Positions 2,594 to 54,457 of a stretch of 64,000 bases of DNA are shown here, in pieces. Position 1 is the stretch's first letter, and every line of letters begins with the position of its first letter. Both the position numbers and the translations under genes were made by a program. The notes beneath the pieces were generated by a model. That model had not been told where the DNA came from. It searched no databases and saw nothing but the letters and a program-made list of their open reading frames with translations. The DNA lies in IMG/VR virus record IMGVR_UViG_3300050821_002957, positions 1-64,000 of that record; one strand, 5' to 3'.

Positions 2594-3112
2594 ATGTCCC
2601 CAAAGACTGACATGTTCGGAACGCCGGTCATCGATTCATTTCGTGACGACTATCGTTTCCTCAGCAATTTTTATGTTGCACCTGTCTCTCTTTGGGGAAT
2701 TAACTTTCCTTCGTCCGAACATGCCTATCAATGGGCCAAGACAGATGACGAGCTTGAAAAGAAGTTCGTACTCTTCAAGCAGCTTCCGCATGTCCAGGGA
2801 TATCGTGTTATCTCGACTTCTCCCGGCCAAGCGAAGCGTGTAGGTAAGACAGTAACAAAACGTGAAGACTGGGATTTGATTCGTCCTGGCATCATGTTGG
2901 AAATTTTGAGAGCCAAGTTTAGTCAGAATCCCGATCTCAAAGAATTACTCCTGGCGACCGGCGATGCAATTCTCATTGAAGGCAACACATGGCACGACAA
3001 CGACTGGGGCCACTGTACGTGTGAGAACTGCATTACCAAGAAAAAATCCAATATGCTTGGTGCTCTGCTTATGCAGGTTCGAGAAGAATTACAAAATGAA
3101 AGACAAGACTAA
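2594..3112 (+). CDS. NADAR family (YbiA-like) N-glycosidase / ADP-ribosyl hydrolase
   Basis: FLSNFY, FPSSEHAYQWAK, KFSQNPDLKELLLATGDAILIEGN-W-D-WG, NMLGALLMQVR motifs. Confidence 0.9.
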   Translation: MSPKTDMFGTPVIDSFRDDYRFLSNFYVAPVSLWGINFPSSEHAYQWAKTDDELEKKFVLFKQLPHVQGYRVISTSPGQAKRVGKTVTKREDWDLIRPGIMLEILRAKFSQNPDLKELLLATGDAILIEGNTWHDNDWGHCTCENCITKKKSNMLGALLMQVREELQNERQD

Positions 3113-3398
3113 AAACGCAATCGAAAAAAAGCTAACCAAAGTAGAAGAGTTGGTTTCTGACATCAGAGTTTTGATGACAGAACAAGAAACCTTACCAATT
3201 TTGTTGACCGAATATGATACTTGGTTGGTTCCTCGGCGAGTCGAATTTTGTGAAAACTGCATGAACATCAAAGCACAAGTAGGATATGCCGAAGTTGACA
3301 TTGAGGACTACAAGAAGGATACAAACTGTATGCCGAATGTCACATGGTGTCGTACATGTGGAGAGACCGGCAGTATCGGTGTCCTTACTGAGTCCTAA
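3096..3398 (+). CDS. Hypothetical protein with two CxxC motifs
   Basis: ATG 3096 overlaps NADAR end; CENC and CRTC. Confidence 0.6.
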   Translation: MKDKTKNAIEKKLTKVEELVSDIRVLMTEQETLPILLTEYDTWLVPRRVEFCENCMNIKAQVGYAEVDIEDYKKDTNCMPNVTWCRTCGETGSIGVLTES

Positions 3399-3406
3399 AT
3401 AGCAAC

Positions 3407-3652
3407 ATGCTTCTCCAGCACCCTCGCATCTATCTGTTCAGTGCAGCGCTCACCGTGATCAATTTAATCACGTTCTGTATCTGTGTCTACAATGGAAACG
3501 CTACAGGGATTGCGTGGAACGGCGTCTTCCTCATTTTTAATCTCATCGCAACCATTGGCAACTTCCGTATTCGTCATCATCGTGCTATACTACGTGAAGA
3601 ACAGAAAATGGAACGGCGAAATCAACTCATACGTTTGACCATCGGCGAGTAG
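3407..3652 (+). CDS. Small two-TM membrane protein
   Basis: Two hydrophobic segments followed by a basic tail. Confidence 0.6.
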   Translation: MLLQHPRIYLFSAALTVINLITFCICVYNGNATGIAWNGVFLIFNLIATIGNFRIRHHRAILREEQKMERRNQLIRLTIGE

Positions 3653-3663
3653 TTTCTACTTGT

Positions 3664-3756
3664 GGTGGCGTGGTGTATGGTTGCACAGCCTGCCTTATAA
3701 GCAGGGTCGCACTAGATGAGTGCCCGGACTGAGTTCAATTCTCAGCGCCACTACCA
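3664..3756 (+). tRNA. tRNA with UAU (Ile) anticodon and long variable arm, 93 nt
   Basis: Acceptor GGTGGCG/CGCCACT-A-CCA; D stem GTGT/GCAC; CCTGC-CT TAT AA-GCAGG; V stem GCACT/AGTGC; T arm CTGAG-TTCAATT-CTCAG. Confidence 0.85.
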
Positions 3757-3763
3757 AAATTTT

Positions 3764-4327
3764 ATGACATCTCTTGAAAAAGCAGGACAAGCAAAGAACC
3801 TTCTCATTGGCATCGCAGAGAAACTGACGGTGCCTGCGCTGACAGATGCCTGCAAGGTCGTTCTGTACGATCCAACCTTCGTGACGCAATACGGCTCGTC
3901 TGGAAAGCACCACAGCTATCCTGGTGGCTTGGCGATGCATACTCTCGAAGTGACTCAGTTTGCCTTGAAGATGGCCGAGATGCTTCCGATGGCCGATACT
4001 GACGTGGTTGCGACGGCGGCAATTTTTCACGACTACACGAAGATCAAGGAATACGCACCAGCAGCACAATTTGGTGATGGTGGATCGGTACGCCATACCA
4101 ACTATCGAAAATTCATTCGTCACGTTGCCGGAAGTCACGCTGCATTCATGATCGCCATCGAAGGAAAACGAGTGCCGGAAGAAAAGGTGTTCCGCATCGA
4201 GCACGCAATCCTGGCACATCATGGTTCGATTGCAGCAGGAAGTCCGATAGATATGGCGCTCATTGAAGCCTACATCGTGCATTACGCAGATTCATTCAGT
4301 GCAAAATTTGGTCCATCGAAAGGATAA
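3764..4327 (+). CDS. HD-domain hydrolase, YhaM/CBF1-like (no OB fold)
   Basis: HHSYPGGLAMHTLEV, FHDYTK, HAILAHHG, IVHYADSFSA; start moved to 3764 because track ATG 3716 lies inside the tRNA. Confidence 0.85.
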   Translation: MTSLEKAGQAKNLLIGIAEKLTVPALTDACKVVLYDPTFVTQYGSSGKHHSYPGGLAMHTLEVTQFALKMAEMLPMADTDVVATAAIFHDYTKIKEYAPAAQFGDGGSVRHTNYRKFIRHVAGSHAAFMIAIEGKRVPEEKVFRIEHAILAHHGSIAAGSPIDMALIEAYIVHYADSFSAKFGPSKG

Positions 4328-4328
4328 A

Positions 4329-4808
4329 ATGTTACTCGACACAATCAACACTCACATTACCGAAGCAATGAAGGCAAAGGATGGTCCACGTCTGACGACA
4401 CTCCGTGCAATCAAGGTGAAGATTGACGCCTTCATGAAAGAACGCATCAATCGAGTCGAAGTGACCGAGGCTAACGAACAGAAGATCCTGGAGAACCTCG
4501 TCAAGCAGCGCCTTGACTCAATTGAACTGTTCGAGAAAGGCAAGCGTTTGGATTTGGTTGCAATTGAAAGAGCCGAACTTGCGCTCATCAAAAGCTACAT
4601 GCCAAAGGATGCGACCGGCGTAGAGATCGACGCTGCAATTGAACTAGCATTACCGGGACTGCTTTCGACGGGTCCCAAGGCAATTGGTATGGTCATGGCC
4701 GATGTCAAAAAGAGATTGGCTGGCAAACGAGTGGATGGAAAGATTCTCTCAGAAAAAATCAAGGCTCGTTTCGTTGTCGCTGAAGCGAACGGTGAGACAT
4801 TCCATTGA
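4329..4808 (+). CDS. yqeY: GatB/YqeY domain protein
   Basis: EAMKAKD..RLTTLRAIK, KQRLDSIELFEKGKRLDL...E.AELALIKSYMP, IGMVM..VK..LAGKRVDG. Confidence 0.88.
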   Translation: MLLDTINTHITEAMKAKDGPRLTTLRAIKVKIDAFMKERINRVEVTEANEQKILENLVKQRLDSIELFEKGKRLDLVAIERAELALIKSYMPKDATGVEIDAAIELALPGLLSTGPKAIGMVMADVKKRLAGKRVDGKILSEKIKARFVVAEANGETFH

Positions 4809-4996
4809 TCGACTGGAAAAGTCTTGGCCTGAAAAAACCTCAGAAAAGAGCCTCTAGCAATCGTGACTCTAATTCGAGACTTCAGGTCAAGTGCATCTGT
4901 GGTCACAAGCAGTTTGAACATGAGTGTCATCCAGACGAACATTGTTACAAATGTGAATGCCGACAATTCAAGAGGTCCCGTCGTCCAACTGGATAG
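4805..4996 (+). CDS. Small Cys/His-rich protein; 3' end overlaps tRNA-Arg(CCG)
   Basis: CICGH..EH.C...HC..CEC pattern; TTG start. Confidence 0.55.
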   Translation: MIDWKSLGLKKPQKRASSNRDSNSRLQVKCICGHKQFEHECHPDEHCYKCECRQFKRSRRPTG

Positions 4997-5049
4997 GACG
5001 CTACCCTCCGAAGGTTGAAATAGTGGTTCAAATCCACTCGGGACTACCA
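4974..5049 (+). tRNA. trnR: tRNA-Arg(CCG)
   Basis: GGTCCCG/CGGGACT-A-CCA; CTACC-CT CCG AA-GGTTG; AGTGG-TTCAAAT-CCACT. Confidence 0.93.
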
Positions 5050-5062
5050 TCTAGATATTGAC

Positions 5063-5251
5063 ATGAATCTGAATGACAAACCAATTAGCGTCACTGGCTC
5101 TGCCAATCCTGTAATCACTCGTGAAGAATATTATAAACGTCGTGAAAAATCTTCTAGCTACATGCCCGGATTAAAGAAAGGCGATCTCCCAAAGCGTATC
5201 AGGACAGCGGAAGATGATATTGCCGACATGCTTTTTGATCTAACAGAATGA
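5063..5251 (+). CDS. Hypothetical protein
   Basis: 62 aa; ATGA overlap with next ORF. Confidence 0.55.
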   Translation: MNLNDKPISVTGSANPVITREEYYKRREKSSSYMPGLKKGDLPKRIRTAEDDIADMLFDLTE

Positions 5252-5586
5252 CCCAAAAAGAACGACAAGCCATATTTGACGTAGTAGGTCAGGAAGCCGA
5301 TTTCCAAAAAATCTCAGGTTCCAATTTTGAAGTCGCTCTCAAGGAATGGTTTGATGATACTGAGAAACCATTCCCGCCCTATATTACAGACATTATCGTC
5401 CAGGTAATTGTTCAGTTAGCCAAGAAACCGCAATTTGAACACTATAAACTCGACGGAGATGTAGCTTTAAGAGCATTTGAACGGGCACTAAAACGAAGAC
5501 CATTTCGTATGATGGAAAATCCCTTTCCGGCTTTGACGAGAGTCGTCTTCGACAGTTTCATACGGCAGATACAACTAAAAAGATAG
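5248..5586 (+). CDS. Hypothetical protein
   Basis: 112 aa ORF. Confidence 0.65.
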   Translation: MTQKERQAIFDVVGQEADFQKISGSNFEVALKEWFDDTEKPFPPYITDIIVQVIVQLAKKPQFEHYKLDGDVALRAFERALKRRPFRMMENPFPALTRVVFDSFIRQIQLKR

Positions 5587-5636
5587 CTCTGCTATATACC
5601 TGTAGAAGTCGAATCTAATCTTCGACCTAGAGGAAT

Positions 5637-5999
5637 ATGAGCAAAGAAAAAGTACAAGACGACAAAATTTTGTTGCGTCTGCCGTCCACTCTGACATCGG
5701 CAGTTGATCAAGTTATTAGAGAGCAAATCCCAGAGTTAAACCGCTCGGAATTCATCCGCAGGGCAGTTCGTTTTACGCTGGATCATGTCGAAGAATTCAA
5801 GACCAGTGATGCGGCGACCGTTCACGAAAAAACAGAAGTCGAGAGTGTTGCAAAGATCAATGCTGTCCGTGACCTTCGTGACCAATTACTACAATACAAG
5901 GATCTGTTGCAGAAGGAACCACAGACTCCAAACACCATCAAACAACTTTCGTTTTTGATCTTTTTGATCGGCGAAATGATCTTTAAGATGAACGATTAA
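5637..5999 (+). CDS. Ribbon-helix-helix (CopG/Arc-like) DNA-binding protein
   Basis: ILLRLPSTLTSAVDQVI...LNRSEFIRRAVRF; AGAGGA SD. Confidence 0.75.
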   Translation: MSKEKVQDDKILLRLPSTLTSAVDQVIREQIPELNRSEFIRRAVRFTLDHVEEFKTSDAATVHEKTEVESVAKINAVRDLRDQLLQYKDLLQKEPQTPNTIKQLSFLIFLIGEMIFKMND

Positions 6000-6026
6000 T
6001 AAACCGACGCTTGTATACATATTTGC

Positions 6027-6662
6027 ATGGAACAAAAACCGTGCCAAGTGTATTACTGTTACAAAACAACCAACATCATAAATGGAAAGGTTTACATTGG
6101 GTTCGCCAGTGATCCCAAAACTCGCTGGCGAAATCATAGAAGAGACGCTGAAACAGGTCGAGGATTTGCCCTCGCCGCCGCAATCCGAAAGTATGGATGG
6201 GACGCATTTGAATTTGAAGTGCTCTGTTGTGGTAAAGACAAGCGTATGATGTTGGAACACGTCGAGCCTGCATTGATTGAACAATATCAAAGTCGCATTG
6301 AACAAAATGGCTACAATGTAACTCGGGGCGGCGAACACATCCCGGTAGGCAATCGAGGTGGCTCTAAAAAAGGTCGTATTGTTTCTGAAGAATCTCGATG
6401 TAAAATGAGTGCTGCTAAGAAAGGCAATGTTAATGGAGCAGGTAACAAAGGCCATAAACATTCCGATGAAACTAAACAAAAAATGGCAGCAGTCCATCTG
6501 GGTCATTTCGTTTCTGAAGAGACACGCAAGAAAATCGGTAATCGTTATCCTCGCACAGAAGAAGAAAAGCAACACCTAAGCAAAATAAATACGGGCCGAA
6601 AACATTCAGAAGAAACCAAACAGAAGATGGCAGCGACAAGACGAGCAATGAGGATTTTGTGA
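6027..6662 (+). CDS. GIY-YIG homing endonuclease with NUMOD3 repeats (Seg-like)
   Basis: YCYKTTNIINGKVYIG; repeated HS(D/E)ETKQKM. Confidence 0.9.
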   Translation: MEQKPCQVYYCYKTTNIINGKVYIGFASDPKTRWRNHRRDAETGRGFALAAAIRKYGWDAFEFEVLCCGKDKRMMLEHVEPALIEQYQSRIEQNGYNVTRGGEHIPVGNRGGSKKGRIVSEESRCKMSAAKKGNVNGAGNKGHKHSDETKQKMAAVHLGHFVSEETRKKIGNRYPRTEEEKQHLSKINTGRKHSEETKQKMAATRRAMRIL

Positions 6663-6663
6663 C

Positions 6664-6876
6664 GTGTGGAAGTACATCAAGGCACTCTTTACCCATCGGC
6701 CAAAATTCTATCGAGGCACCACAGATAAATTTTGCCACAGCCTTACCGCAAAGGGCAGGCGCATTCGTATTTTCGGATTCGCCTGGGGACCTTTTATGAT
6801 TGCATTCCATACACTCGACTTGACAAATAGCAGACCTTCTGTAAAATACAAAGGGTACTCCAATGAAGCTGACTGA
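6664..6876 (+). CDS. Hypothetical protein
   Basis: 70 aa, GTG start 1 nt after upstream stop. Confidence 0.5.
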   Translation: MWKYIKALFTHRPKFYRGTTDKFCHSLTAKGRRIRIFGFAWGPFMIAFHTLDLTNSRPSVKYKGYSNEAD

Positions 6877-7047
6877 AATGGAAAAGAAAATTTTGTTCGA
6901 TGCAATAACACTGTACAAAAACAGAGCAGAGACGATGTTGATACTACCATCTCGGCACTTCGTAGCAAATTGAAACGTGCTCTGGCTGAAGGAACCAACA
7001 GCACCGGCCCAAGATGATCTATTTGGTTGGAATGCGAAAATAATACC

Positions 7048-7075
7048 TTGACATCCTGATCCAATGTGGTATTCT
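7048..7075 (+). promoter_or_regulatory. sigma70-like promoter upstream of tRNA array
   Basis: TTGACA-16 nt-TATTCT preceded by TGTGG, same layout as 2561..2588. Confidence 0.6.
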
Positions 7076-7083
7076 TAGAACAT

Positions 7084-7156
7084 CAGAGGCGAAGTGCTCT
7101 GTTGAAGGGATCTTGGTTCATCCATGACCCTGCGTAGATAGAGCACTTCGCTGCTG
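7084..7156 (+). ncRNA. Candidate structured RNA / 5' leader hairpin
   Basis: Perfect 12 bp GCGAAGTGCTCT (7089-7100)/AGAGCACTTCGC (7140-7151) with inner AGGG/CCCT and TGG/CCA stems; no ORF. Confidence 0.45.
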
Positions 7157-7164
7157 TATAAATA
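7157..7164 (+). promoter_or_regulatory. T4-type late promoter
   Basis: Exact TATAAATA 17 nt before the leader ATG. Confidence 0.7.
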
Positions 7165-7181
7165 GAAACGAGAACACAGTC

Positions 7182-7229
7182 ATGAGACGAATTACCATTA
7201 CACGCCGAGAGGTTAAACGAAAGCGGTAG
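7182..7229 (+). CDS. Putative leader peptide MRRITITRREVKRKR (15 aa)
   Basis: ATG...TAG immediately downstream of late promoter; stop overlaps 5' arm of a hairpin. Confidence 0.5.
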   Translation: MRRITITRREVKRKR

Positions 7230-7273
7230 CGACAAGCTAACGCTCTAGTGCATTGGTGTTTCGTCGCTGCCGC
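7223..7273 (+). terminator. Hairpin (possible attenuator or processing stem) before first array tRNA
   Basis: GCGGTAGCGAC (7223-7233) pairs with GTCGCTGCCGC (7263-7273), followed by CTTT. Confidence 0.5.
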
Positions 7274-7291
7274 CTTTACAGTTTCCAACAT

Positions 7292-7368
7292 GGATCTGTA
7301 ACTCAAACGGACAGAGTAACCGTCTTTTAAACGGAAGGCTGTGGGATCGTACCCCACCAGATCCACCA
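7292..7368 (+). tRNA. trnK: tRNA-Lys(UUU)
   Basis: GGATCTG/CAGATCC-A-CCA; CT TTT AA loop; atypical T loop ATCGTAC. Confidence 0.92.
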
Positions 7369-7390
7369 AATTTTTCAGTTTTACCCATGT

Positions 7391-7467
7391 GGTCTCGTAG
7401 CTCAATGGATTAGAGTACTTCGCTACGAACGAAGGGGTTGCAGGTTCGAGTCCTGCCGAGACTACCA
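7391..7467 (+). tRNA. trnR: tRNA-Arg(ACG)
   Basis: GGTCTCG/CGAGACT-A-CCA; CTTCG-CT ACG AA-CGAAG. Confidence 0.95.
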
Positions 7468-7477
7468 CAATTTTTGC

Positions 7478-7551
7478 TGGCGATTAGTTCAAAGGTAGAA
7501 CCCCTGGCTGATTACCGGGAGACAAGAGTTCGATTCTCTTATCGCCTACCA
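7478..7551 (+). tRNA. Atypical tRNA with GAU (Ile) anticodon
   Basis: TGGCGAT/ATCGCCT-A-CCA (1:72 T:T); CCTGG-CT GAT TA-CCGGG (T37); AAGAG-TTCGATT-CTCTT. Confidence 0.8.
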
Positions 7552-7999
7552 TTTCGTCATGAATTTCACCATGACAGTTGGAACAGACAAGTATGCATTT
7601 GTTTAATTCGATTTTGATGTCTGACCATGATTTACCGCTGTTGTTTGAGATAGTGAAATCTTTTTGTGACGGATCTGTATGATGAAAATCCAGAGACCGA
7701 AGACATCGATTGTAACCACAGCGAGCACAGGAGCCGCCCAAATATTCTACGGCTTTTGCTTTGATATTTTGCCGACGTTTTTTGACTGATTGATAAGACG
7801 TTATAGTTCGAGGCCGACGAGGAACATGTTTAGCGCAATATGATCGTTTGCTACTGACCGGACTATTGCAAATTTGACATCGCCATTTTGTCCGATATTC
7901 TGTGAAACAATTTCGAGAACAGAATGGATTTGTTGGTTCGATAGATTTAGTTTTTTTGCGGTTGAAGTCTATACCGCAGTGCGTACACCTAAAGGTCAT
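7484..7999 (-). CDS. HNH endonuclease inserted antisense in tRNA array
   Basis: CARCGYNRC..SLDFHH.DP..K...CILVCSNCHGEIH; N-terminal Zn fingers; last codons antisense to tRNA 7478..7551. Confidence 0.88.
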   Translation of the reverse strand: MTFRCTHCGIDFNRKKTKSIEPTNPFCSRNCFTEYRTKWRCQICNSPVSSKRSYCAKHVPRRPRTITSYQSVKKRRQNIKAKAVEYLGGSCARCGYNRCLRSLDFHHTDPSQKDFTISNNSGKSWSDIKIELNKCILVCSNCHGEIHDEMVGDKRIELLSPGNQPGVLPLN

Positions 8000-8004
8000 A
8001 TGAC

Positions 8005-8011
8005 TATTTAG
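8005..8011 (-). promoter_or_regulatory. Late promoter CTAAATA
   Basis: 5 nt upstream of HNH ATG. Confidence 0.7.
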
Positions 8012-8036
8012 GATTAGCGCAATGTTAAGGGTTTGC

Positions 8037-8111
8037 GTCCCTGTAGCTCAACGGATAGAGCACTTGCCTTCTAAGCTCGGGATCTAGGTTCGATTCCTAG
8101 CAGGGATACCA
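8037..8111 (+). tRNA. trnR: tRNA-Arg(UCU)
   Basis: GTCCCTG/CAGGGAT-A-CCA; CTTGC-CT TCT AA-GCTCG (two stem mismatches). Confidence 0.9.
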
Positions 8112-8114
8112 TTT

Positions 8115-8188
8115 AGCCGCATAGCTCAACCCGGTAGAGCGTCTGCCTTACATGCAGAGGGTTCTCAGTTCAACTCTGAGTGTGGCTA
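8115..8188 (+). tRNA. trnV: tRNA-Val(UAC), CCA not encoded (TCA)
   Basis: AGCCGCA/TGTGGCT-A; TCTGC-CT TAC AT-GCAGA; CTCAG-TTCAACT-CTGAG. Confidence 0.9.
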
Positions 8189-8221
8189 TCAAATTTTAAG
8201 TAATAGGAAGAAGTAAAGAAA

Positions 8222-8404
8222 GTGATTTGTAGAGTATGTGGCGAAGAATTTTCGCCCGGAAGTAAACACCCAGGATACATTAATGTATGCCTGCAAGAAG
8301 AATGCAGAGAGACTGCTCGTGAACCTCTGGTGAGGCCGTTGGTATTGACAACTACGGTGAGCGTCCTGTATGATTCTGAAATAGAGACAAGTTTGGACTG
8401 GTAA
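8222..8404 (+). CDS. Small Zn-finger-like hypothetical protein
   Basis: CRVC...C..EEC; GTG start; ends inside tRNA-Lys(CUU). Confidence 0.45.
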   Translation: MICRVCGEEFSPGSKHPGYINVCLQEECRETAREPLVRPLVLTTTVSVLYDSEIETSLDW

Positions 8405-8469
8405 CTCAATGGTAGAGTAACTGGCTCTTAACCAGTAAGTTGTGGGTTCGAGTCCCACCCGGTCCACCA
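8395..8469 (+). tRNA. trnK: tRNA-Lys(CUU)
   Basis: GGACTGG/CCGGTCC-A-CCA; ACTGG-CT CTT AA-CCAGT. Confidence 0.95.
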
Positions 8470-8492
8470 AATTTTGTAGAGGACAAAAAGCA

Positions 8493-9156
8493 ATGCCCAT
8501 CGTAGAAATAAGAGCCGCCGAAGGTGGTCTCGACGCAAAGCTGTTAGTAGATGATCAATTCACGATCTATCTAAAGCTGGCAGAGCGGAGGGGTCTTTGA
8601 GGTTGAGATAACTGAAAAGACTGAAGGATTCGTCGCATTTGTTGTGAGTGGTGACAAAGCCGAAGCAACGTTTGCAAATGAAGCAGGCGGTCATCGCTGG
8701 CAAAGAGTCCCGCCAACCGAACGCAAAGGAAGAATTCAGACAAGCACAATCACGGTTGCTGTCTTGCCTGAACCCCAAGCCGAAGAATTCAAGATTGACG
8801 AAAAGGATCTTGAATGGAGCACAACCATCAGTCAAGGTAAAGGTGGACAGTCGGTCAACACAACTTACTCTTGTGTCATCCTAAAACACAAGCCATCTGG
8901 TGAAACCGTTCGTTGTCAAAATGAGCGATCACAGTTGCGAAACAAGCAGACCGCATTGCGAGTGCTGCGATCACGTCTTCTGGCGCAAAAAGAAAACGCA
9001 GAGCACGCCAGCGAGTCAAAACAACGCAAAGATCAAATTGGTTCGGGTCAGCGTGGAGACAAACGCCGCACGATTCGAGTGAAAGATGGTCAAGTCAATG
9101 ATCATGTGACTGGGCAAAAATGGTCCCTGAAGAAGTACTTGAATGGGGACTGGTAA
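8493..9156 (+). CDS. Class I peptide chain release factor homolog (RF1-type PxT, GGQ) expressed by +1 frameshift at CTT-TGA 8595-8600; about 220 aa
   Basis: Frame 0 MPIVEIRAAEGGLDAK...ERRGL-stop; +1 frame EVEITEK...HRWQRVPPTERKGRIQTS...GKGGQSVN...RTIRVKDGQVNDH. Confidence 0.88.
8587..8601 (+). other. prfB-type programmed +1 frameshift cassette
   Basis: GGAGG-GGT-CTT-TGA-G: internal SD 3 nt before CTT TGA. Confidence 0.88.
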
Positions 9157-9271
9157 AAGCATTTTGTCTAGTCCCGTCCTCTATTTCTTTATCGCACTTA
9201 AGACAGATCGGCACCCCATTTACGTACAGACATGTTTCAGATTTGTGGCAGCGAACACATTCAGTTTTCAT
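9095..9271 (-). CDS. Small CxxC/CxxC protein (58 aa, not in track), convergent with release factor
   Basis: MKTECVRCHKSETCLYVNGVPICLKCDKEIED...; about 40 nt downstream of a minus-strand promoter. Confidence 0.55.
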   Translation of the reverse strand: MKTECVRCHKSETCLYVNGVPICLKCDKEIEDGTRQNAFTSPHSSTSSGTIFAQSHDH

Positions 9272-9311
9272 AAAACACTTTTTGATAGTTTTGATTTAGC
9301 TTCTACACAAA

Positions 9312-9340
9312 ATCTTACAAAACTTCTAAAAAAGTGTCAA
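9312..9340 (-). promoter_or_regulatory. sigma70 promoter pointing toward release factor and tRNA array
   Basis: Minus strand TTGACA-17 nt-TAAGAT with A-rich upstream tract. Confidence 0.7.
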
Positions 9341-9376
9341 TACTCTTTTTGGCTAGGTATGTGATATACTACTTGT

Positions 9377-9452
9377 GGGTCCATCGTCTAACGGGATAGG
9401 GCACTTGTTTCCTAAACTTGAAGTCCAGGTTCGAGTCCTGGTGGGCCTACCA
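9377..9452 (+). tRNA. trnR: tRNA-Arg(CCU)
   Basis: GGGTCCA/TGGGCCT-A-CCA; CTTGT-TT CCT AA-ACTTG (two T:T mismatches). Confidence 0.9.
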
Positions 9453-9496
9453 ATCTCCGCAACTTCTGCGGCGAATAGCACTCTTAATCACCGCAT

Positions 9497-9525
9497 TTGA
9501 CCATCAGACTTCACTCTGCTAAACT
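9497..9525 (+). promoter_or_regulatory. sigma70-like promoter
   Basis: TTGACC-17 nt-TAAACT. Confidence 0.6.
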
Positions 9526-9531
9526 GTTTCC

Positions 9532-9987
9532 ATGAGTTGCTGGAACTACGACGAATTCAAAGCAGAGTTGAAAAGAATCGATCTCGATGTTCCGACTCCT
9601 GAGAAAAAAGCCAGTGGCTATAACAGAGTCGAGTACGGCGGATTGACGCTGATCAACAATAAGCCTGCGTTCGTCAATTCGTGGCACGTTGGTGGATCAT
9701 CAGGAGCCGGATATTGGGGCGATGAGGATCTTCACAGCTATGTTACCGGCGAGCCAGAACCAGAATGGGCCGACCTGACGAAAGTTTTGGAGCACTTCTG
9801 TCCAAGCATTACTTTTTTGAAATATAAGAAGCTGATGACCATCACCAAGTCAGATTCATGGAGCCGAAACGACTACTACGGTAATGAAACGAACTATTCA
9901 TATCGATACGTTTTTGTCGAAAACTTGTTTAGATTTTTGAACGACGACGGACTCATCGAACGAGAAATGGTGGATGACTCAGAATGA
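9532..9987 (+). CDS. Hypothetical protein
   Basis: 151 aa; ATGA overlap with next ORF. Confidence 0.7.
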   Translation: MSCWNYDEFKAELKRIDLDVPTPEKKASGYNRVEYGGLTLINNKPAFVNSWHVGGSSGAGYWGDEDLHSYVTGEPEPEWADLTKVLEHFCPSITFLKYKKLMTITKSDSWSRNDYYGNETNYSYRYVFVENLFRFLNDDGLIEREMVDDSE

Positions 9988-10478
9988 GCGAAGTAATCAT
10001 GATTGTAGGTCTGCCGGGTTCCGGGAAGACCACCTATGCTAGAAAGTTGATTCAAGAAATCAATTTCGCAAAAATTCTTTTCGATGATCCAGGTACTTGT
10101 CGCAAAGGACTTGACGCACTCGAAGAATGGATTGAAGACGGCGAGAATGCTGTAGTGACCGATGTCTACGGCATAACCACAGCAAAGCGCACCGAAATAC
10201 TTGACGCTCTCATTTCCTGGGGCGCAACCAAAATCACCTGGATCTTCTTTGAGAACAATCCAGAAGCGTGCATCCGAAATATCAAACGCCGTAACGAAAA
10301 AGACCCAAATTATCGGGTAGTTGCTGATGTCACAGTGCGGGAGCTTTCTCTTCTTTACCAGATCCCGGACGGTGCCACAGTCATTCCAGTCTATTCGCCA
10401 GTGGTCGATGTAAATATCAAAGGTGAATCTTTCACAGAACAGGATCTCATCGATGCAGGGCAGGATTGGGGCGAATGA
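9984..10478 (+). CDS. P-loop kinase (AAA_33 / polynucleotide-kinase-like)
   Basis: VIMIVGLPGSGKTT Walker A; ACIRNIKRR lid-like motif. Confidence 0.75.
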   Translation: MSEVIMIVGLPGSGKTTYARKLIQEINFAKILFDDPGTCRKGLDALEEWIEDGENAVVTDVYGITTAKRTEILDALISWGATKITWIFFENNPEACIRNIKRRNEKDPNYRVVADVTVRELSLLYQIPDGATVIPVYSPVVDVNIKGESFTEQDLIDAGQDWGE

Positions 10479-14245: not shown

Positions 14246-14835
14246 AAACTTTCACACCAGAAACCACCAAGATCCTTACCACCGAATTGAACGTGGCATT
14301 GGAATTCGTCAACGGAATTTTTCCCTTGATTCCTCTCGCCCGGATCGTCGAACTGATCAATGCGTACAATCTCGACGCAAGTCAGATTGTTCATCAACTC
14401 GGACCAGACAATGGGCGTATGGTCGTGCCGGTCGCCGCCGACATCTTCTTTGTCATGTCCTGGTATCGCTTTGAGACTGGTACATTTGAAATTGTCTGCT
14501 ACGCCACCAGCAACTTCGATGATTACGAGAAACCTTTCACCGCAGTCTACAAGGCACAAGAAAGAGCCGCTCGTCTGCGTCGTCTGAATTCTACGCTTCG
14601 TAATCTTCCTCCTTATTTCAACGGCAAGGGTCATGCTTTTGCTTGTGTCGAGAACCATATCATCAGCGCCGGGTTTGATCATCGAGAGTTTCAAGACGAT
14701 ACGACTAGCGGCAAATTTAGTTGTATGGGTGAGCAAGGCCGGATCATGTCGGACATCAGCAACAATGCTTTTATTGTCGTAACATGGTACAAGATGCCGT
14801 CAGGAAATTACGAGATCATTGCATATGCCAGCTAA
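14242..14835 (+). CDS. Hypothetical protein with duplicated domain
   Basis: FVMSWYRFETGTFEIVCYA and IVVTWYKMPSGNYEIIAYA. Confidence 0.7.
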   Translation: MKTFTPETTKILTTELNVALEFVNGIFPLIPLARIVELINAYNLDASQIVHQLGPDNGRMVVPVAADIFFVMSWYRFETGTFEIVCYATSNFDDYEKPFTAVYKAQERAARLRRLNSTLRNLPPYFNGKGHAFACVENHIISAGFDHREFQDDTTSGKFSCMGEQGRIMSDISNNAFIVVTWYKMPSGNYEIIAYAS

Positions 14836-15715
14836 AACAGCACACCAAATCAAATTGATCAAAAAGATCACTCACCTAAAGACTGCAATCGAAGCTGGTG
14901 ACACCACTTTGCAGCTAGAATTGAAGAAGCTAGAAAACGATCTGAAAAGTTCTCTTGGATCGGTCGGACAAAAAAAGAAACAACAAAAACCAAAGCCGGT
15001 CCAGGTCAATCACGCCTGCCGAGATGCAGTGACCGGAGAATGGAAGCTGTGTGAAGTCTGCCAAGGCCGAGTCCACAAACACGGCTGTAAGACAATCAAG
15101 AAAGAGTGGGATTGCTGCAAAAAGCGTCATACCAAGATGGGTCTGGAGTGGGTGGGAAAGTCAGACGCCGACTACTACGAACGCAAGACGAAAATCACTC
15201 TCGAAGAAGGATTCGATTTCATCAATTCCCTCGAAGCTACGGCAGAAATTGACGGCGTAGTATGTAGCATCAAATCTGGTGGTGTGCGCCTGCCGACGTT
15301 TGTCAAACATGGCACTACGTGTGTGACGTGCAAGCTCCCGGCGTCGTTCTTTGCGGTCGAGCGCCGGGGTGGACAGACTACTCGTTATCACCTGAACCTG
15401 TACGGCGTGAACGACAAAGGAATGGACGTGCTCTTTACGCATGACCATATCCTAGCTCGCTCTGCTGGTGGTCTGGACACACTGGAGAACACACAGACCA
15501 TGTGCAGTCCATGCAACTCACACAAGTCTACTTACGAGCCGAGAAACACAAAACGACAGGCGGCAAAAGAGATCGCCAAACTCACCCAGAAGTTGTACGA
15601 CGGAAATCATGCTGCTGCGATCACTGGAGAGATTTATCGTGAAATTCGTATCGGCGCATCCCACGAATCTTCCGAAGTTTTTGACTACTCCGTAAAGGAA
15701 CAACATGCCAGCTAA
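14825..15715 (+). CDS. HNH endonuclease domain protein
   Basis: CVTC...FTHDHILARSAGGLDTLENTQTMCSPCNSHK; flanked by 11 bp direct repeats. Confidence 0.8.
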   Translation: MPAKTAHQIKLIKKITHLKTAIEAGDTTLQLELKKLENDLKSSLGSVGQKKKQQKPKPVQVNHACRDAVTGEWKLCEVCQGRVHKHGCKTIKKEWDCCKKRHTKMGLEWVGKSDADYYERKTKITLEEGFDFINSLEATAEIDGVVCSIKSGGVRLPTFVKHGTTCVTCKLPASFFAVERRGGQTTRYHLNLYGVNDKGMDVLFTHDHILARSAGGLDTLENTQTMCSPCNSHKSTYEPRNTKRQAAKEIAKLTQKLYDGNHAAAITGEIYREIRIGASHESSEVFDYSVKEQHAS

Positions 15716-50005: not shown

Positions 50006-50392
50006 CTACGAAACTGTAGCCGTGACGTTTCCGGTCAAAAATTTCAATACGTCACCAGCACCCACGTATTGAGGCGAAACCAAAGGTCCAAAGAACAACA
50101 AATTACCGCCTGTCGATGCATCTAGAATTGCTGCATAAACCACGTTGCCCCAGACACTCCCAGCGTAAGGGAAGGCAATATCCGTAGTGTTTGAGACGCT
50201 GCCGCCTGAGGGCGTACCAAATATGATTGGCTGGCGTACATAACTGACACCACTGATTTCTGTTCCGGTATCTGAAGCCGTAGGATTGGTCAAATAAAGA
50301 GCGAGAAACCAACTTGTAGGTAATGTAAACGAAGCATCGGTCAACAATGCGCCAATGACCTTGTTCGCTGTGGTCGTTCCAAGTGCTGCCAT
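50006..50392 (-). CDS. Phage tail/fibre-associated protein, paralog family A
   Basis: FLALYLTNPT, EISGVSYVRQPI. Confidence 0.75.
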   Translation of the reverse strand: MAALGTTTANKVIGALLTDASFTLPTSWFLALYLTNPTASDTGTEISGVSYVRQPIIFGTPSGGSVSNTTDIAFPYAGSVWGNVVYAAILDASTGGNLLFFGPLVSPQYVGAGDVLKFLTGNVTATVS

Positions 50393-51297
50393 TATGCGCT
50401 CACATGGAAAAGCGTTCCTCTCATTGATGCTGGGAGAGTAACGTTTCCGTTATTGTTATTTGTTAAACTATAGTAAGTATGCGAATCGACCAAAGAAGTT
50501 GTGTCTGCTGGATACGATTCAGTTGCAATGAACGAATCCCAAAGTTGTCCAGTGAGTTTTCCTTCATTATCGATAGTCGGAGCACCCCATGCAATTAGCG
50601 GTTCGACTATCAACGCTGAATCGTCAACCCAACGGTATCCTGTAATCACATGAGTAGCCGTCGATTGAAAACAAACCAATGATGGAAGACCGGGGTGAGT
50701 TGAACTGTCTGCTGCGATTGCATTATACTCTACCGCTGTGCTATTGATGATCGACCATCCTTGTGAAGGTGCATACCCAACCAAACCTCGTGCATTTAAT
50801 GATGTTCTAAAACTTCCTACCGTGTTACTTGTATCCGTATCAGACTGACCATCGCCCATAATGAATGCAGCGGTTGTCACTCCAAAGGTCACCAAGTTTG
50901 GCGGAAGATAGACGGCGCTCGCCATACAAAAATTTCGACTTGAAACCGATCCCGGAACAAAAATCACAAATTGATACTTGTCTGCGATGATACGATAATT
51001 CGCACTCGATGATGGATACAAAAAACAACCAACCGATTGGCTGAGTGTTTGTGTTGTATTCATCATACGAAGGCAAATACTCTGTGTACTGCCACCTGGA
51101 TCAAAAACTCGTACCTTGATCTGATTGCTCTGAGGCGTAAGAGCACTTTGATAGATTTTGTCTACGGAACTGTTGGTCGTCGTGATGCTCCAACCGGCTC
51201 CTGTAATTGCCGAATCAATCGCTGCGAATAATGATGCCTTATCCACAACGGTAGTAAGTGTGTTGACGAGTGTGCCGCCTGCGTATTGAATTGCCAT
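50392..51297 (-). CDS. Virion protein, paralog family C
   Basis: ADKYQFVIFVPGS, GQLWDSFIATESY. Confidence 0.7.
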   Translation of the reverse strand: MAIQYAGGTLVNTLTTVVDKASLFAAIDSAITGAGWSITTTNSSVDKIYQSALTPQSNQIKVRVFDPGGSTQSICLRMMNTTQTLSQSVGCFLYPSSSANYRIIADKYQFVIFVPGSVSSRNFCMASAVYLPPNLVTFGVTTAAFIMGDGQSDTDTSNTVGSFRTSLNARGLVGYAPSQGWSIINSTAVEYNAIAADSSTHPGLPSLVCFQSTATHVITGYRWVDDSALIVEPLIAWGAPTIDNEGKLTGQLWDSFIATESYPADTTSLVDSHTYYSLTNNNNGNVTLPASMRGTLFHVSA

Positions 51298-51298
51298 G

Positions 51299-52378
51299 TT
51301 AGCTTGTAATCTCTATTCCAAATTCTGCGTCGTTCAAATCCACCAATGCCCACGGAGCCGATGTCGCAGGATTGTACTCCCAGATGTCTCCCATGTACGT
51401 GTATGAAGAGTAACAAACAAAATCTGGACCTTGATAATTGGTAGATCCTAATCTTAGCAAGGGACAGACGCTTCGGCTTCCCGTATTGTCCCGTCTCACT
51501 GACATGTGTTCTTGAACTGCAAAAATATTGCCAGTGATAGCAAAAGGAGTGATCGAATAAAGATCGATTGCACCCACGTTTCCATTGTAATTATATAGTC
51601 CAGTCTCTACGTAGTTCGTCACACCATCGACGTTCAAAGCATTGACAGAGCCAGTAGAACGTAAGAAATCATTTTCGTATCCATCTGCATCAGGATAGTT
51701 CGTCTGGACTCTGACCTCTCCTAAGAAAGTCGTGTGTCTTAGACCATCGTTAGGGTCGATCATGTAAAAATCATCGACAATCACGGATGGTCCAAGTCCA
51801 CCCATTTGAGACAAGTGAAAAATATTCCAAGTTGGATTGCTACTCTGTTGTGTTGTGATGCCGCCGACATTGCATAAAGTTGCTCCATCGACACGAATTT
51901 CTACGCTGCCAGGACTACCGACTGTAATTGCAATTTCGATATAAAACCACAATGTCAAAGGAGGGACAAATGTGGTTGTTGCTAGAATCGTATCTGTAAT
52001 TTGATCGCCATAGCCGGTCCTAACTTCGATCACATAAGTTGTAGGGTTAACCCACACCGAACACTGAATTGTTTCTACTGATGACTGAAAGTCACCCAAA
52101 AACATAAATGGCTCAGTGATGCCGCTATTGAAACCCTGAAAAGAATTAATCAAAACCGCAAATCCTACGATCACACCGGCACGGCTTGACGTAAATTGTT
52201 TATGAAGTCCATTCTGGATACCTTCGGTCGTACCAGTGCTTGAACCAAGAGACACACAACCACCGCCCCATCTTCCCACACCACCGTTTATGGCATTCGT
52301 CGCTTGATCCCATAGACGACCACCAGGACCATAGACGTTTTGTGTGAAATCGAACCCATCAAAGAAAATTATGCTCAT
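51299..52378 (-). CDS. Virion protein, paralog family B (LamG/ConA-like)
   Basis: MSIIFFDGFD, WFYIEI, DDFY...LGEVRVQT.YP. Confidence 0.75.
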   Translation of the reverse strand: MSIIFFDGFDFTQNVYGPGGRLWDQATNAINGGVGRWGGGCVSLGSSTGTTEGIQNGLHKQFTSSRAGVIVGFAVLINSFQGFNSGITEPFMFLGDFQSSVETIQCSVWVNPTTYVIEVRTGYGDQITDTILATTTFVPPLTLWFYIEIAITVGSPGSVEIRVDGATLCNVGGITTQQSSNPTWNIFHLSQMGGLGPSVIVDDFYMIDPNDGLRHTTFLGEVRVQTNYPDADGYENDFLRSTGSVNALNVDGVTNYVETGLYNYNGNVGAIDLYSITPFAITGNIFAVQEHMSVRRDNTGSRSVCPLLRLGSTNYQGPDFVCYSSYTYMGDIWEYNPATSAPWALVDLNDAEFGIEITS

Positions 52379-52380
52379 AC

Positions 52381-53427: not shown

Positions 53428-53430
53428 TGA

Positions 53431-54456: not shown

Positions 54457-54457
54457 G

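Follow-up and report, generated by a model that had tools for sequence, protein, structure and literature searches.

AUA decoding and non-canonical long tRNAs

AUA is the one sense codon for which bacteria almost universally depend on an essential modification enzyme, TilS, and a plain tRNA with a UAU anticodon is poorly charged by the standard isoleucyl-tRNA synthetase (IleRS), the kcat/Km of E. coli IleRS being 360-fold lower for UAU than for the lysidine-containing LAU (PMC3575796). Known exceptions are the tRNA-Ile2(UAU) of Mycoplasma mobile (Taniguchi et al. 2013, PMC3575796) and the U34 suppressor tRNA-Ile of tilS-deleted Bacillus subtilis, which decode AUA independently of TilS with an unmodified-C-free UAU anticodon and contain A73, A35, U36, A37 and A38. 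These are ordinary 76-nt class I tRNAs, and M. mobile solves the charging problem on the enzyme side, through Arg865 of its IleRS. Long tRNAs with a UAU anticodon are known from two other contexts. The allo-tRNAs (Mukai et al. 2017, PMC5389517; Krahn et al. 2020, PMC7609411), which include allo-tRNA(UAU) species, are abundant in acidobacterial and soil data and in phages, and are defined by a 12-bp acceptor branch split 8/4 or 9/3 between acceptor and T stems, mostly with the G73 or U73 of Ser identity, a long D stem with a tetraloop and an anticodon stem longer than 5 bp. The nematode nev-tRNA-Ile(UAU) (Hamashima et al. 2012, PMC3333845; 2015, PMC4300185) is eukaryotic, derives from the class II tRNA-Leu and is leucylated in vitro; no GAU loop motif has been reported for it. 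In the bacterial class II tRNAs (Leu, Ser, Tyr) and in tRNA-Sec, which are also about 85-95 nt long with a hairpin in the variable region, the arm joins the T stem through 0-2 bases and its loop is not conserved, tRNA-Sec being in addition 8/5 with a UCA anticodon. Outside tRNA, hairpins that copy the anticodon loop and stem determinants can recruit the cognate synthetase, as with the E. coli thrS mRNA operator bound by ThrRS, where the mimic lies in an mRNA and represses translation; the term anticodon mimic is used in a review of tRNA identity.

The sequence described here was found in a window of 64,000 nt (positions 1 to 64,000 of the IMG/VR record IMGVR_UViG_3300050821_002957). The initial annotation had described a hidden 93-nt tRNA with a UAU anticodon and a long variable arm, and had inferred that it could be a TilS-independent AUA decoder, or else a missense tRNA charged with an amino acid other than Ile (for example Leu) or a decoy. 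That such a tRNA gene lies there, with the coordinates and anatomy described, is confirmed by the analysis. The interpretation attached to it is only partly supported: the idea of a TilS-independent AUA decoder stands, while the inference that a long variable arm implies Leu, Ser or Tyr ancestry, and with it Leu missense decoding or a decoy, is not supported.

Structure and conservation of the tRNA(UAU) gene

ARAGORN calls a 93-nt tRNA(UAU) at exactly 3664-3756 on the (+) strand, which is the coding strand, in the tRNA region of the phage, and the covariance model R1 gives it 102 bits. In this molecule, the acceptor stem is formed by 3664-3670 pairing with 3746-3752, with a G1.U72 wobble, and is followed by U8 and G9. 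The wobble is common in the family, in which the 1-72 pair is G.U in 164 of 308 members and A-U in 39. The compact D arm (3673-3686) consists of the stem GUGU/GCAC (3673-3676 pairing with 3683-3686) around the 6-nt loop AUGGUU, or of a 5-bp stem with the tetraloop UGGU, the loop holding G18 and G19 in either case, and compensatory G-C to A-U changes are seen at 10-25. Two bases (AG), instead of one, precede the decoding arm (3689-3705), which has a 5-bp stem CCUGC/GCAGG (3689-3693 pairing with 3701-3705) and the canonical 7-nt loop CUUAUAA (C32 U33 U34 A35 U36 A37 A38), with the anticodon UAU at 3696-3698. The variable region comprises 23 nt (3706-3728). Its hairpin, GCAC(U)/(A)GUGC, had been read in the initial annotation as a 5-bp stem, which leaves a 5-nt loop, but comparison within the family favours a 4-bp stem GCAC/GUGC with the 7-nt loop UAGAUGA (3709-3723), in which GAU occupies 3715-3717 and the third pair from the loop is C-G. 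The 5-nt single-stranded linker CCGGA (3724-3728) between this extra arm and the T stem behaves like an ordinary variable loop, its last base acting as position 48: the pairing 15-48 is complementary in 113 of 167 members, against 56 of 167 for the neighbouring-base control. The T arm (3729-3745) has a 5-bp stem CUGAG/CUCAG and the loop UUCAAUU, and the 3' strand of the acceptor stem is followed by the discriminator A73 (3753) and an encoded CCA (3754-3756). The criteria of a canonical elongator cloverleaf are thus fulfilled, the deviations being the two bases before the anticodon stem, the short D loop and the absence of a match to the Rfam tRNA model (RF00005). The ATG at 3716-3718, which starts the longest HD ORF (the 203-aa HD call), lies inside the loop of the variable arm, and the likelier HD start is the ATG at 3764.

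Several lines of evidence indicate that this structure is more than chance. Seven syntenic orthologues from related jumbo phages give the same RNAalifold structure, with 19 of 26 pairs showing compensatory changes; they lie in the loci L048 (9902-9995), L049 (634-726), L051 (804-895), L052, L053 (5762-5855), L054 (5875-5966) and L057 (2741-2832). On 85 diverse relatives, the anticodon, variable and T helices are 97.3% paired and 12 of 13 pairs change on both sides, with a covariation score of 0.888 against 0.193 for shuffles and at most 0.154 for slid controls; all five pairs of the anticodon stem covary, and the stem of the extra arm is 98.8% paired with all four pairs covarying. However, the single-sequence fold is not exceptional (z = -1.68), and an Rfam scan of positions 3000-10000 at E <= 1 gave no family hit at the site, including tRNA and tRNA-Sec; the Rfam tRNA model also misses the relatives with a compact D arm.

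A widespread family with a GAU-loop extra arm

Pattern scans of viral contigs and metagenomes found at least 300 distinct relatives, and 308 distinct members were compared. They occur in viral and metagenome contigs, in cultured phages of E. coli, Klebsiella, Pectobacterium, Vibrio, Xanthomonas and Synechococcus, and in chromosomal tRNA arrays of Acidobacteriota and Elusimicrobia, and most copies are unannotated in the GenBank records. These counts are biased by the search patterns, and the members are phylogenetically related. Megablast and blastn searches of INPHARED phages with the region, the tRNA and two other subfamilies gave no match, the HD protein gave only remote hits in the phage collection, and the pattern CTTATAAGCAGG..GATKAG gave only chance hits beyond the known copies. 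The other eight tRNAs of the window showed no significant similarity to the acidobacterial arrays; only the L048 orthologue closely resembles the chromosomal copy of Bryobacterales.

Members of the family have five helices, the acceptor, the D arm, a canonical UAU anticodon arm, a second short hairpin and the T arm, and share a 7/5 acceptor/T branch, A73 (305 of 308), a canonical UAU anticodon loop, and a 3-6 bp hairpin in the variable region with a 7-nt loop Y-N-G-A-U-N-A, followed by 4-7 unpaired bases; CCA is encoded in 215 of 308. D arms differ radically, with three or more designs that range from a 4-nt tetraloop to canonical 8-nt loops. The loop variant UAGAUGA of the window occurs in 14-15 distinct relatives. 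The hairpin looks like the anticodon arm of tRNA-Ile(GAU): GAU was found in 48 of 48 contigs in a scan that left the loop free, and the pair equivalent to C29-G41 is C-G in 259 of 308 members (84%), against 59 of 308 (19%) in the UAU arm. This enrichment could reflect stem stability, since the pair next to the loop is also C-G in 83% of members. The link to the anticodon is exclusive in the sequences examined, as 178 of 178 hairpin-bearing sequences from an anticodon-agnostic scan have a UAU anticodon and the NNGAUNA hairpin is absent from 393 Ser, Leu, Tyr and other long tRNAs in the same loci. No complementarity that would allow a kissing interaction between CUUAUAA and YNGAUNA was seen by eye.

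The similarity to allo-tRNAs is partial. Some members have a compact D arm with a tetraloop (in the window, a 5-bp D stem with a tetraloop is possible), compact-D relatives have 6-7 bp anticodon stems, and both groups have been described as five-stem junctions. However, the 8/4 reading is rejected by covariation: the 49-65 pair is Watson-Crick in 202 of 208 members and covaries (GC 95, CG 79, AU 16, UA 12), whereas bases 8 and 65 are mostly unpairable, with A/C in 70 members and A/G in 34. Moreover, the discriminator is A73, the anticodon stem in the window is 5 bp, and the fifth loop drawn for allo-tRNA(UAU) lies between the acceptor and D arms. Neither allo-tRNA paper mentions in its text a GAU loop or IleRS, although partial overlap with their allo-tRNA(UAU) sequences cannot be excluded. 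Literature searches found no description of a GAU-loop extra arm in tRNA(UAU).

Codon usage and isoleucine determinants

A count of codons, which the initial annotation had proposed as a check, showed that ATA makes up 7% of Ile codons in the genes of the window; the other tRNAs of the phage read Arg, Lys, Ile and Val codons. In the phage terminase, the three alignable ATA codons fall in columns of distant homologues reading V78/I12, V66/I26 and I88/V4, with no Leu. In the 933-aa tail-fibre-like protein, the ATA sites lie in variable columns. In acidobacterial tRNA arrays, the family member is the only obvious AUA reader, beside one or two CAU tRNAs.

The bacterial (E. coli-type) tRNA-Ile identity set comprises A73, C4-G69, U12-A23, G16, U20, U21, C29-G41, G34, A35, U36, A37 and A38 (PMC9976931). 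Of these, A73 is present in the window tRNA. The decoding loop contains A35, U36, A37 and A38 but has U34 instead of G34 or lysidine, and its stem has U29-A41; G-A-U-x-A (3715-3719) and the C-G third pair are found instead in the extra arm. The minor determinants are not conserved: the window has G4-C69 and G12-C23, the 4-69 pair in the family is A-U in 101 members, C-G in 95 and G-C in 91, and the short D loop cannot be numbered for positions 16, 20 and 21.

Functional interpretation

The reading considered somewhat more likely than not is that 3664-3756 encodes a functional elongator tRNA that reads the rare codon AUA with a UAU anticodon that TilS cannot modify and that carries isoleucine. 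In this view, the second hairpin reproduces the parts of the tRNA-Ile(GAU) anticodon arm that bacterial IleRS reads (G34, A35, U36, A38 and the C29-G41 pair) and would supply the determinants that U34 lacks; because it usually lacks U33 and often A37, it should be unfit for decoding or for t6A modification. As ordinary bacterial IleRS charges a UAU tRNA poorly, the extra arm would serve as the anticodon for the synthetase, most likely by taking the anticodon-arm position during charging, while the UAU arm is presented to the ribosome. Unlike the mimic in the thrS mRNA operator, this one would sit inside a tRNA, next to a different, decoding anticodon. The result would be a plug-in AUA decoder that needs neither the TilS of the host nor a specialised IleRS, in diverse hosts that include E. 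coli, whose IleRS disfavours UAU. The gene, its structure and conservation, the invariant GAU loop, its exclusive association with UAU and the Ile-like use of ATA rest on the analysis itself, and the role as AUA decoder is well supported, whereas charging with isoleucine and the function of the extra arm are inferred from sequence alone, as would be expression and modification of any member. Some features do not fit easily. IleRS is a class Ia enzyme, and in a standard class II tRNA geometry the variable arm points away from such enzymes, so that the model needs an arm swap or an unusual junction fold. In addition, t6A37 is a strong determinant for bacterial-type IleRS, but the extra loop often has U, G or C at that position (G in the window), and ordinary-length phage tRNA(UAU) genes without the arm also exist, so the arm is not indispensable.

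The main alternative, considered unlikely although less so than the others, is that the tRNA is an AUA-decoding tRNA-Ile whose extra arm has nothing to do with IleRS. The arm could be a handle for another factor, such as a U34 or A37 modification enzyme or its exclusion, a ribosomal contact that suppresses AUG misreading, or protection from a host anticodon nuclease, or it could simply be a relic of the insertion that created the UAU arm in a tRNA-Ile(GAU) gene. Indeed, the anatomy looks like a tRNA-Ile(GAU) with a UAU hairpin inserted after position 26, the extra arm being followed by a variable loop of normal length, and the same phages carry tRNA-Ile(GAU) genes with the very loop CYGAUUA. 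A fidelity device is conceivable, since M. mobile tRNA(UAU) misreads AUG on E. coli ribosomes (PMC3575796), and position 37 of the extra loop varies, unlike in a strict IleRS mimic. However, a relic would not keep GAU invariant while its stem covaries freely across phyla, no modification enzyme or nuclease is known to read GAU in a variable arm, and the enriched C29-G41 equivalent is specifically an IleRS determinant.

Much less likely is a missense tRNA, in which A73 and the long extra arm make a LeuRS (or SerRS) substrate so that AUA is read as Leu (or Ser). A73 and a large variable region are listed among the bacterial Leu determinants (PMC9976931), nev-tRNA(UAU) is leucylated in vitro, and allo-tRNAs insert Ser at Leu codons in E. 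coli. With nev-tRNA, however, only the combination of anticodon and long arm is shared, and the phage and bacterial family shows Ile-type, not Leu-type, signatures. Against missense decoding, the extra arm is not a class II variable arm, with a stem of only 3-6 bp and 4-7 free bases (five in the window) before the T stem, and its loop sequence is conserved, which neither LeuRS nor SerRS requires. The variation among D arms is hard to reconcile with LeuRS, which reads D-loop and tertiary features, and of the class II determinants only A73 fits Leu, there being no G73 or U73 for SerRS and not the G34 and U35 of Tyr in the window tRNA. The Ile/Val-only terminase columns and the position of the gene as the only obvious AUA reader in near-complete arrays also argue against missense decoding. 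Similarly unlikely is a non-translating tRNA-like RNA, whether a decoy or sponge for IleRS or a nuclease, a regulator, or a mobile-element-associated pseudo-tRNA as proposed for allo-tRNA(UAU). Mukai et al. found six allo-tRNA(UAU) variants, which may or may not belong to this family, inactive in an E. coli Ser-reporter and linked them to transposons and toxin-antitoxin loci, and the failure of the Rfam model to detect the window copy could be read in the same way. Nevertheless, a Ser146 reporter could not have scored an Ile-charged tRNA, the anticodon loop is fully canonical, the T loop is standard, G18 and G19 are present, and members sit in line with ordinary tRNAs in arrays and phage clusters.

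Conclusions

A bolder form of the preferred model, which remains tentative but is not excluded, is that of a natural tRNA with two anticodon arms and a division of labour, in which IleRS reads a disabled GAU arm in the variable region and the ribosome reads a separate UAU arm. Amino-acid identity would thereby be uncoupled from the decoding anticodon, in what would be the first case of a tRNA whose synthetase-recognition anticodon is physically separate from its decoding anticodon, a principle of direct use for engineering orthogonal or recoded tRNAs. Recognition of the family would also explain hundreds of unannotated intergenic gaps in phage genomes, including those of cultured E. coli, Klebsiella, Vibrio, Pectobacterium and Synechococcus phages, and would correct gene calls that start inside the tRNA, as the HD call does here. 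A widespread, mobile tRNA design that side-steps both the dependence on TilS and the poor charging of UAU tRNAs would add a third natural solution to the AUA problem, and phages and mobile tRNA arrays would gain a portable AUA decoder that works in any host, without TilS and without an adapted IleRS.

Structure of the tRNA(UAU) gene

The 405,631-bp IMG/VR contig IMGVR_UViG_3300050821_002957 belongs to a T4-like jumbo myovirus with portal, sheath and large-terminase genes. In its first 64 kb ARAGORN calls nine tRNAs, all on the + strand, the first of which is a 93-nt tRNA-Ile(tat) located at exactly 3664-3756. This tRNA consists of a 7-bp acceptor stem with a G1.U72 wobble followed by U8 and G9, a D stem GUGU/GCAC around AUGGUU, two bases (AG) before the anticodon stem, an anticodon stem CCUGC/GCAGG with loop CUUAUAA, a 23-nt variable region that holds the hairpin GCAC-UAGAUGA-GUGC, a 5-nt linker CCGGA, a T arm CUGAG-UUCAAUU-CUCAG, and A73 with an encoded CCA. 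The minimum-free-energy fold is this cloverleaf plus hairpin, although on its own the energy is unremarkable (z = -1.68). The Rfam tRNA model finds the other eight tRNAs at 46-74 bits but finds nothing at this site, even at E <= 1. The initial annotation, which had described a hidden 93-nt tRNA with a UAU anticodon and a long variable arm, is thus confirmed as an observation.

The other eight tRNAs, located at 4974-9452 (+), read only Arg (CCG, ACG, UCU, CCU), Lys (UUU, CUU), Ile (GAU) and Val (UAC) codons, a set that could reflect rare-codon supply or replacement of nuclease-targeted host tRNAs. The tRNA region also contains a GIY-YIG/NUMOD3 homing endonuclease of the group-I-intron type (6027-6662, +), while an HNH endonuclease lies at 14819-15715. 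Among the tRNA genes there is also a 170-aa ORF (8644-9156, +) that matches only the C-terminal half of release factor 1 (NCBIfam prfA positions about 163-338, with PCRF-end and RF-1 domains) and is conserved in a related phage, at 14878-15381 of the metagenome contig L048. Elsewhere in the window, five consecutive ORFs of similar size (301-359 aa; 50392-55519, -) follow one another and may be paralogous structural genes.

Orthologues in related phages

The longest HD-domain ORF next to the tRNA starts at ATG 3716 (3716-4327, +), inside the hairpin loop, and a public gene call (P0001, 203 aa) uses this start. However, the in-frame ATG at 3764, eight bases after the tRNA, gives an HD/YhaM-like protein of 187 aa (3764-4327, +) and fits the 178-209-aa homologues better. 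Homologues of this HD protein led to metagenome contigs of related phages in which the block NADAR, small ORF, tRNA, HD, (YqeY) and tRNA-Arg(CCG) is kept. In the window the conserved block spans 2594-4808 (+) and comprises NADAR (2594-3112), an 81-aa ORF (3407-3652), the tRNA, the HD/YhaM-like protein and a YqeY-like tRNA-binding-domain protein (4263-4808). NADAR and HD flank the tRNA in all of the contigs L048, L052-L054 and L057, while YqeY is called only in L048 and L057, and the block is not linked to the tRNA in cyanophages or coliphages. A 92-94-nt tRNA(UAU) is present at the syntenic site in each of the contigs L048, L049, L051, L052, L053, L054 and L057. RNAalifold on the MAFFT alignment returns the same five-helix structure without prompting, predicting 26 pairs of which 19 have compensatory changes. 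The gene is real and under structural selection.

A large family of tRNA(UAU) genes with an extra hairpin

The exact anticodon arm of the window tRNA also occurs in unrelated viral contigs that carry other long tRNA(UAU) genes, the variable-arm loops of which read GAUUAG where the window reads AGAUGAG. A pattern that fixes only the UAU loop, GATTA and a T loop returned at least 119 stretches in viral contigs and at least 120 in metagenome contigs, both of which are lower bounds. Of 210 distinct sequences, 208 parse as tRNAs with 7-bp acceptor stems. Allowing A, G or C at the sixth loop position, in a scan that again gave only a lower bound, recovered the window's own UAGAUGA type in 14-15 further distinct sequences. 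Among the 308 distinct members thus assembled, A73 is present in 305, the 1-72 pair is G.U in 164 and A-U in 39, and CCA is encoded in 215. The extra hairpin has 3-6 bp, most often 4, and its 7-nt loop reads Y-N-G-A-U-N-A, with CAGAUUA occurring 193 times, UAGAUAA 28, CAGAUAA 23, CUGAUUA 16 and UAGAUGA 14. The linker before the hairpin is mostly 2 nt and the linker after it is 4-7 nt. D arms come in at least three designs: a 4-bp stem with tetraloop UGGU after a single linker base, the window type with a 5-6-nt loop, and fully canonical arms. In 85 members with no more than 86% pairwise identity, the anticodon, extra and T helices are 97.3% paired and 12 of 13 pairs change on both sides, with a covariation score of 0.888 against 0.193 +/- 0.014 for shuffles and at most 0.154 for slid partners. 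The base after A14 is complementary to the last linker base in 113 of 167 members, against 56 of 167 for the neighbouring base, as expected for a 15-48 Levitt pair in an L-shaped core.

Because most scans fixed GAT, the motif was also examined with a scan that fixes only the commonest extra stem (GCGC/GCGC), leaves the seven loop bases free, and did not saturate. All 48 contigs returned (25 distinct sequences) have G-A-U at loop positions 3-5, and 45 have A at position 7. A scan that fixes the extra arm and the T loop but not the anticodon returned 178 hairpin-bearing sequences, every one of which has a UAU anticodon, in loops such as CUUAUAA, UUUAUAA and CUUAUAC. Conversely, among distinct ARAGORN tRNAs of at least 82 nt in the loci collected, 221 of 223 with UAU have the hairpin, whereas none of the 393 genuine Ser, Leu, Tyr and other long tRNAs has it; the single further hit is a miscalled family member. 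Two other kinds of tRNA-like sequence in these loci are not called by ARAGORN. Locus L014 contains, in an 18-tRNA array, an 88-nt tRNA-like gene (339-426, -) with a UGA anticodon, a long variable arm and a shortened T arm that may be an 8/4-type tRNA-Ser. In addition, a roughly 77-nt tRNA(UAU)-like sequence with the same anticodon arm but a non-canonical T loop lies next to tRNA-His in the loci L010 (6317-6393), L011 (6759-6835, -) and L012 (4164-4240, -).

Distribution in phages and cellular genomes

Cultured phages that carry the gene include Synechococcus phages S-SRM01 and S-SKS1, Klebsiella phage KP13-26, where even ARAGORN misses it, Escherichia phages ESCO41, ETEP102, CEB_EC3a, BEK6 and others, Pectobacterium phages PhiM1, Arno162 and Wc4, Vibrio phages River4 and Pylo, and Xanthomonas phage Xoo-sp13. 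Seven of those 25 records annotate it as tRNA-Ile, one lays a hypothetical protein over it, and the rest annotate nothing. In KP13-26 (locus L539), the cluster with the unannotated long tRNA(UAU) also contains a tRNA annotated as tRNA-Pyl (4044-4118), which has a CUA anticodon and so looks like an amber suppressor.

A scan of cellular genomes, with one genome per species, returned about 48 real copies, mostly from Acidobacteriota (Bryobacterales, Pyrinomonadaceae and Blastocatellia, Terriglobia), plus Elusimicrobia and Nostoc. These copies lie inside arrays of 10-34 tRNA genes, alongside tRNA-Ile(GAU) and only one or two CAU tRNAs. In acidobacterial MAG chromosomes (L351 3297-6791, and the loci L359, L338, L317, L340, L331 and L300) arrays of 20-34 tRNA genes occur within 3-4 kb and include odd calls such as tRNA-Cys(ACA), and an Elusimicrobiota locus (L344) has a 'Tyr(AUA)' call. 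The Bryobacterales copy is of the window's subtype and is nearly identical to the L048 orthologue outside the UAU stem, which hints at an acidobacterial host; however, this is only a hint, because the window's other tRNAs show no such similarity. The Rfam tRNA model detects canonical-D members (62.6 bits) and the Bryobacterales type (38.4 bits), but misses the window copy, L048, L053, both cyanophage copies and the Terriglobia type.

Resemblance of the extra arm to the anticodon arm of tRNA-Ile(GAU)

The hairpin plus the 4-7 bases after it have the form of an anticodon arm followed by an ordinary variable loop, and the UAU arm looks like an insertion after position 26. Its removal from, for example, the members at loci L197 or L014 leaves a normal-length tRNA-Ile(GAU). 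The bacterial isoleucine identity set is A73, C4-G69, U12-A23, G16, U20, U21, C29-G41, G34 (or lysidine), A35, U36, t6A37 and A38 (PMC9976931), of which the extra arm carries G34', A35', U36' and A38'. The third pair from the loop, which is the 29-41 equivalent, is C-G in 259 of 308 extra arms, against 59 of 308 UAU arms, and in the 85-sequence alignment it is C-G in 83 of 85 while its neighbours covary freely. Position 33' is usually A, so no U-turn can form, and position 37' is U, A, G or C; both features would disable decoding, and often t6A formation as well. The same phage lineage also carries 74-76-nt tRNA-Ile(GAU) genes whose anticodon loop is the very CYGAUUA. The window's copy (7478-7551, +) has the loop CUGAUUA, with U37 instead of the near-universal purine, and a U1xU72 mismatch, and the same U37 type occurs in the related phages at L048 13666, L053 9689, L054 9185 and L057 7667. 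Most other phage and array tRNA-Ile(GAU) genes keep A37, and many have C33.

Meaning of AUA codons in the phage

ATA makes up 7% of Ile codons (4.2 per thousand) in 91 ORFs of the window and is nearly absent from the most highly expressed structural genes. In the large terminase, three ATA codons can be aligned with 92 homologues of less than 65% identity, and the corresponding columns read V78/I12, V66/I26 and I88/V4, with no Leu, while columns under the phage's Leu codons are 51% Leu. A fourth informative site, in another protein, reads V14/I6. The sample is small, but it runs against a Leu-inserting tRNA.

Proposed mechanism and comparison with known systems

E. coli IleRS charges a UAU variant of tRNA-Ile2 with a 360-fold lower kcat/Km than the lysidine form, a problem that M. 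mobile solves with an Arg in its IleRS (PMC3575796). A phage or mobile tRNA array cannot change the host enzyme, and a CAU tRNA would depend on host TilS. We therefore propose that the extra arm is the handle of the synthetase and the UAU arm that of the ribosome. IleRS is a class Ia enzyme that does not face a class II variable arm, and the model thus needs the GAU arm to stack under the D stem during charging, with the UAU arm doing so on the ribosome, or else a different junction geometry. While the gene, its covarying structure, the conserved GAU loop and its link to UAU follow from the sequence comparisons, isoleucine charging, the role of the extra arm and this stacking step are inferred. 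Weak points of the proposal are that t6A37 would not form in most extra loops, that the minor determinants (4-69, 12-23) are not conserved, and that short tRNA(UAU) genes without the arm exist in other phages.

Allo-tRNAs are defined by 8/4 or 9/3 branches and mostly have G73 or U73. Allo-tRNA(UAU) was reported as the most abundant group, was described as inactive in an E. coli Ser146 reporter and was drawn with a fifth loop between the acceptor and D arms. The present family is 7/5, with a 49-65 pair that is Watson-Crick in 202 of 208 members and covaries, and with bases 8 and 65 that do not pair; it has A73, and its fifth helix lies in the variable region. Neither of the papers on allo-tRNAs (PMC5389517; PMC7609411) mentions GAU or IleRS. 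The family is therefore not classified here as allo-tRNA, although overlap with allo-tRNA sequences not given in the text of those papers cannot be excluded. Nematode nev-tRNA-Ile(UAU) shares the anticodon and a long arm, but it is Leu-derived and leucylated in vitro. Literature searches found no description of the present design.

The interpretation offered in the initial annotation is partly supported, since its suggestion of a TilS-independent AUA decoder is the best supported reading, whereas its alternatives of a Leu-missense tRNA or a decoy are not supported. What could not be seen from a single sequence is that the 'variable arm' looks like a conserved copy of the isoleucine GAU anticodon arm. 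This arm is present in hundreds of phage and bacterial genes and, in the scans made here, is tied exclusively to UAU, and the uncoupling of amino-acid identity from the decoding anticodon is put forward as a hypothesis.
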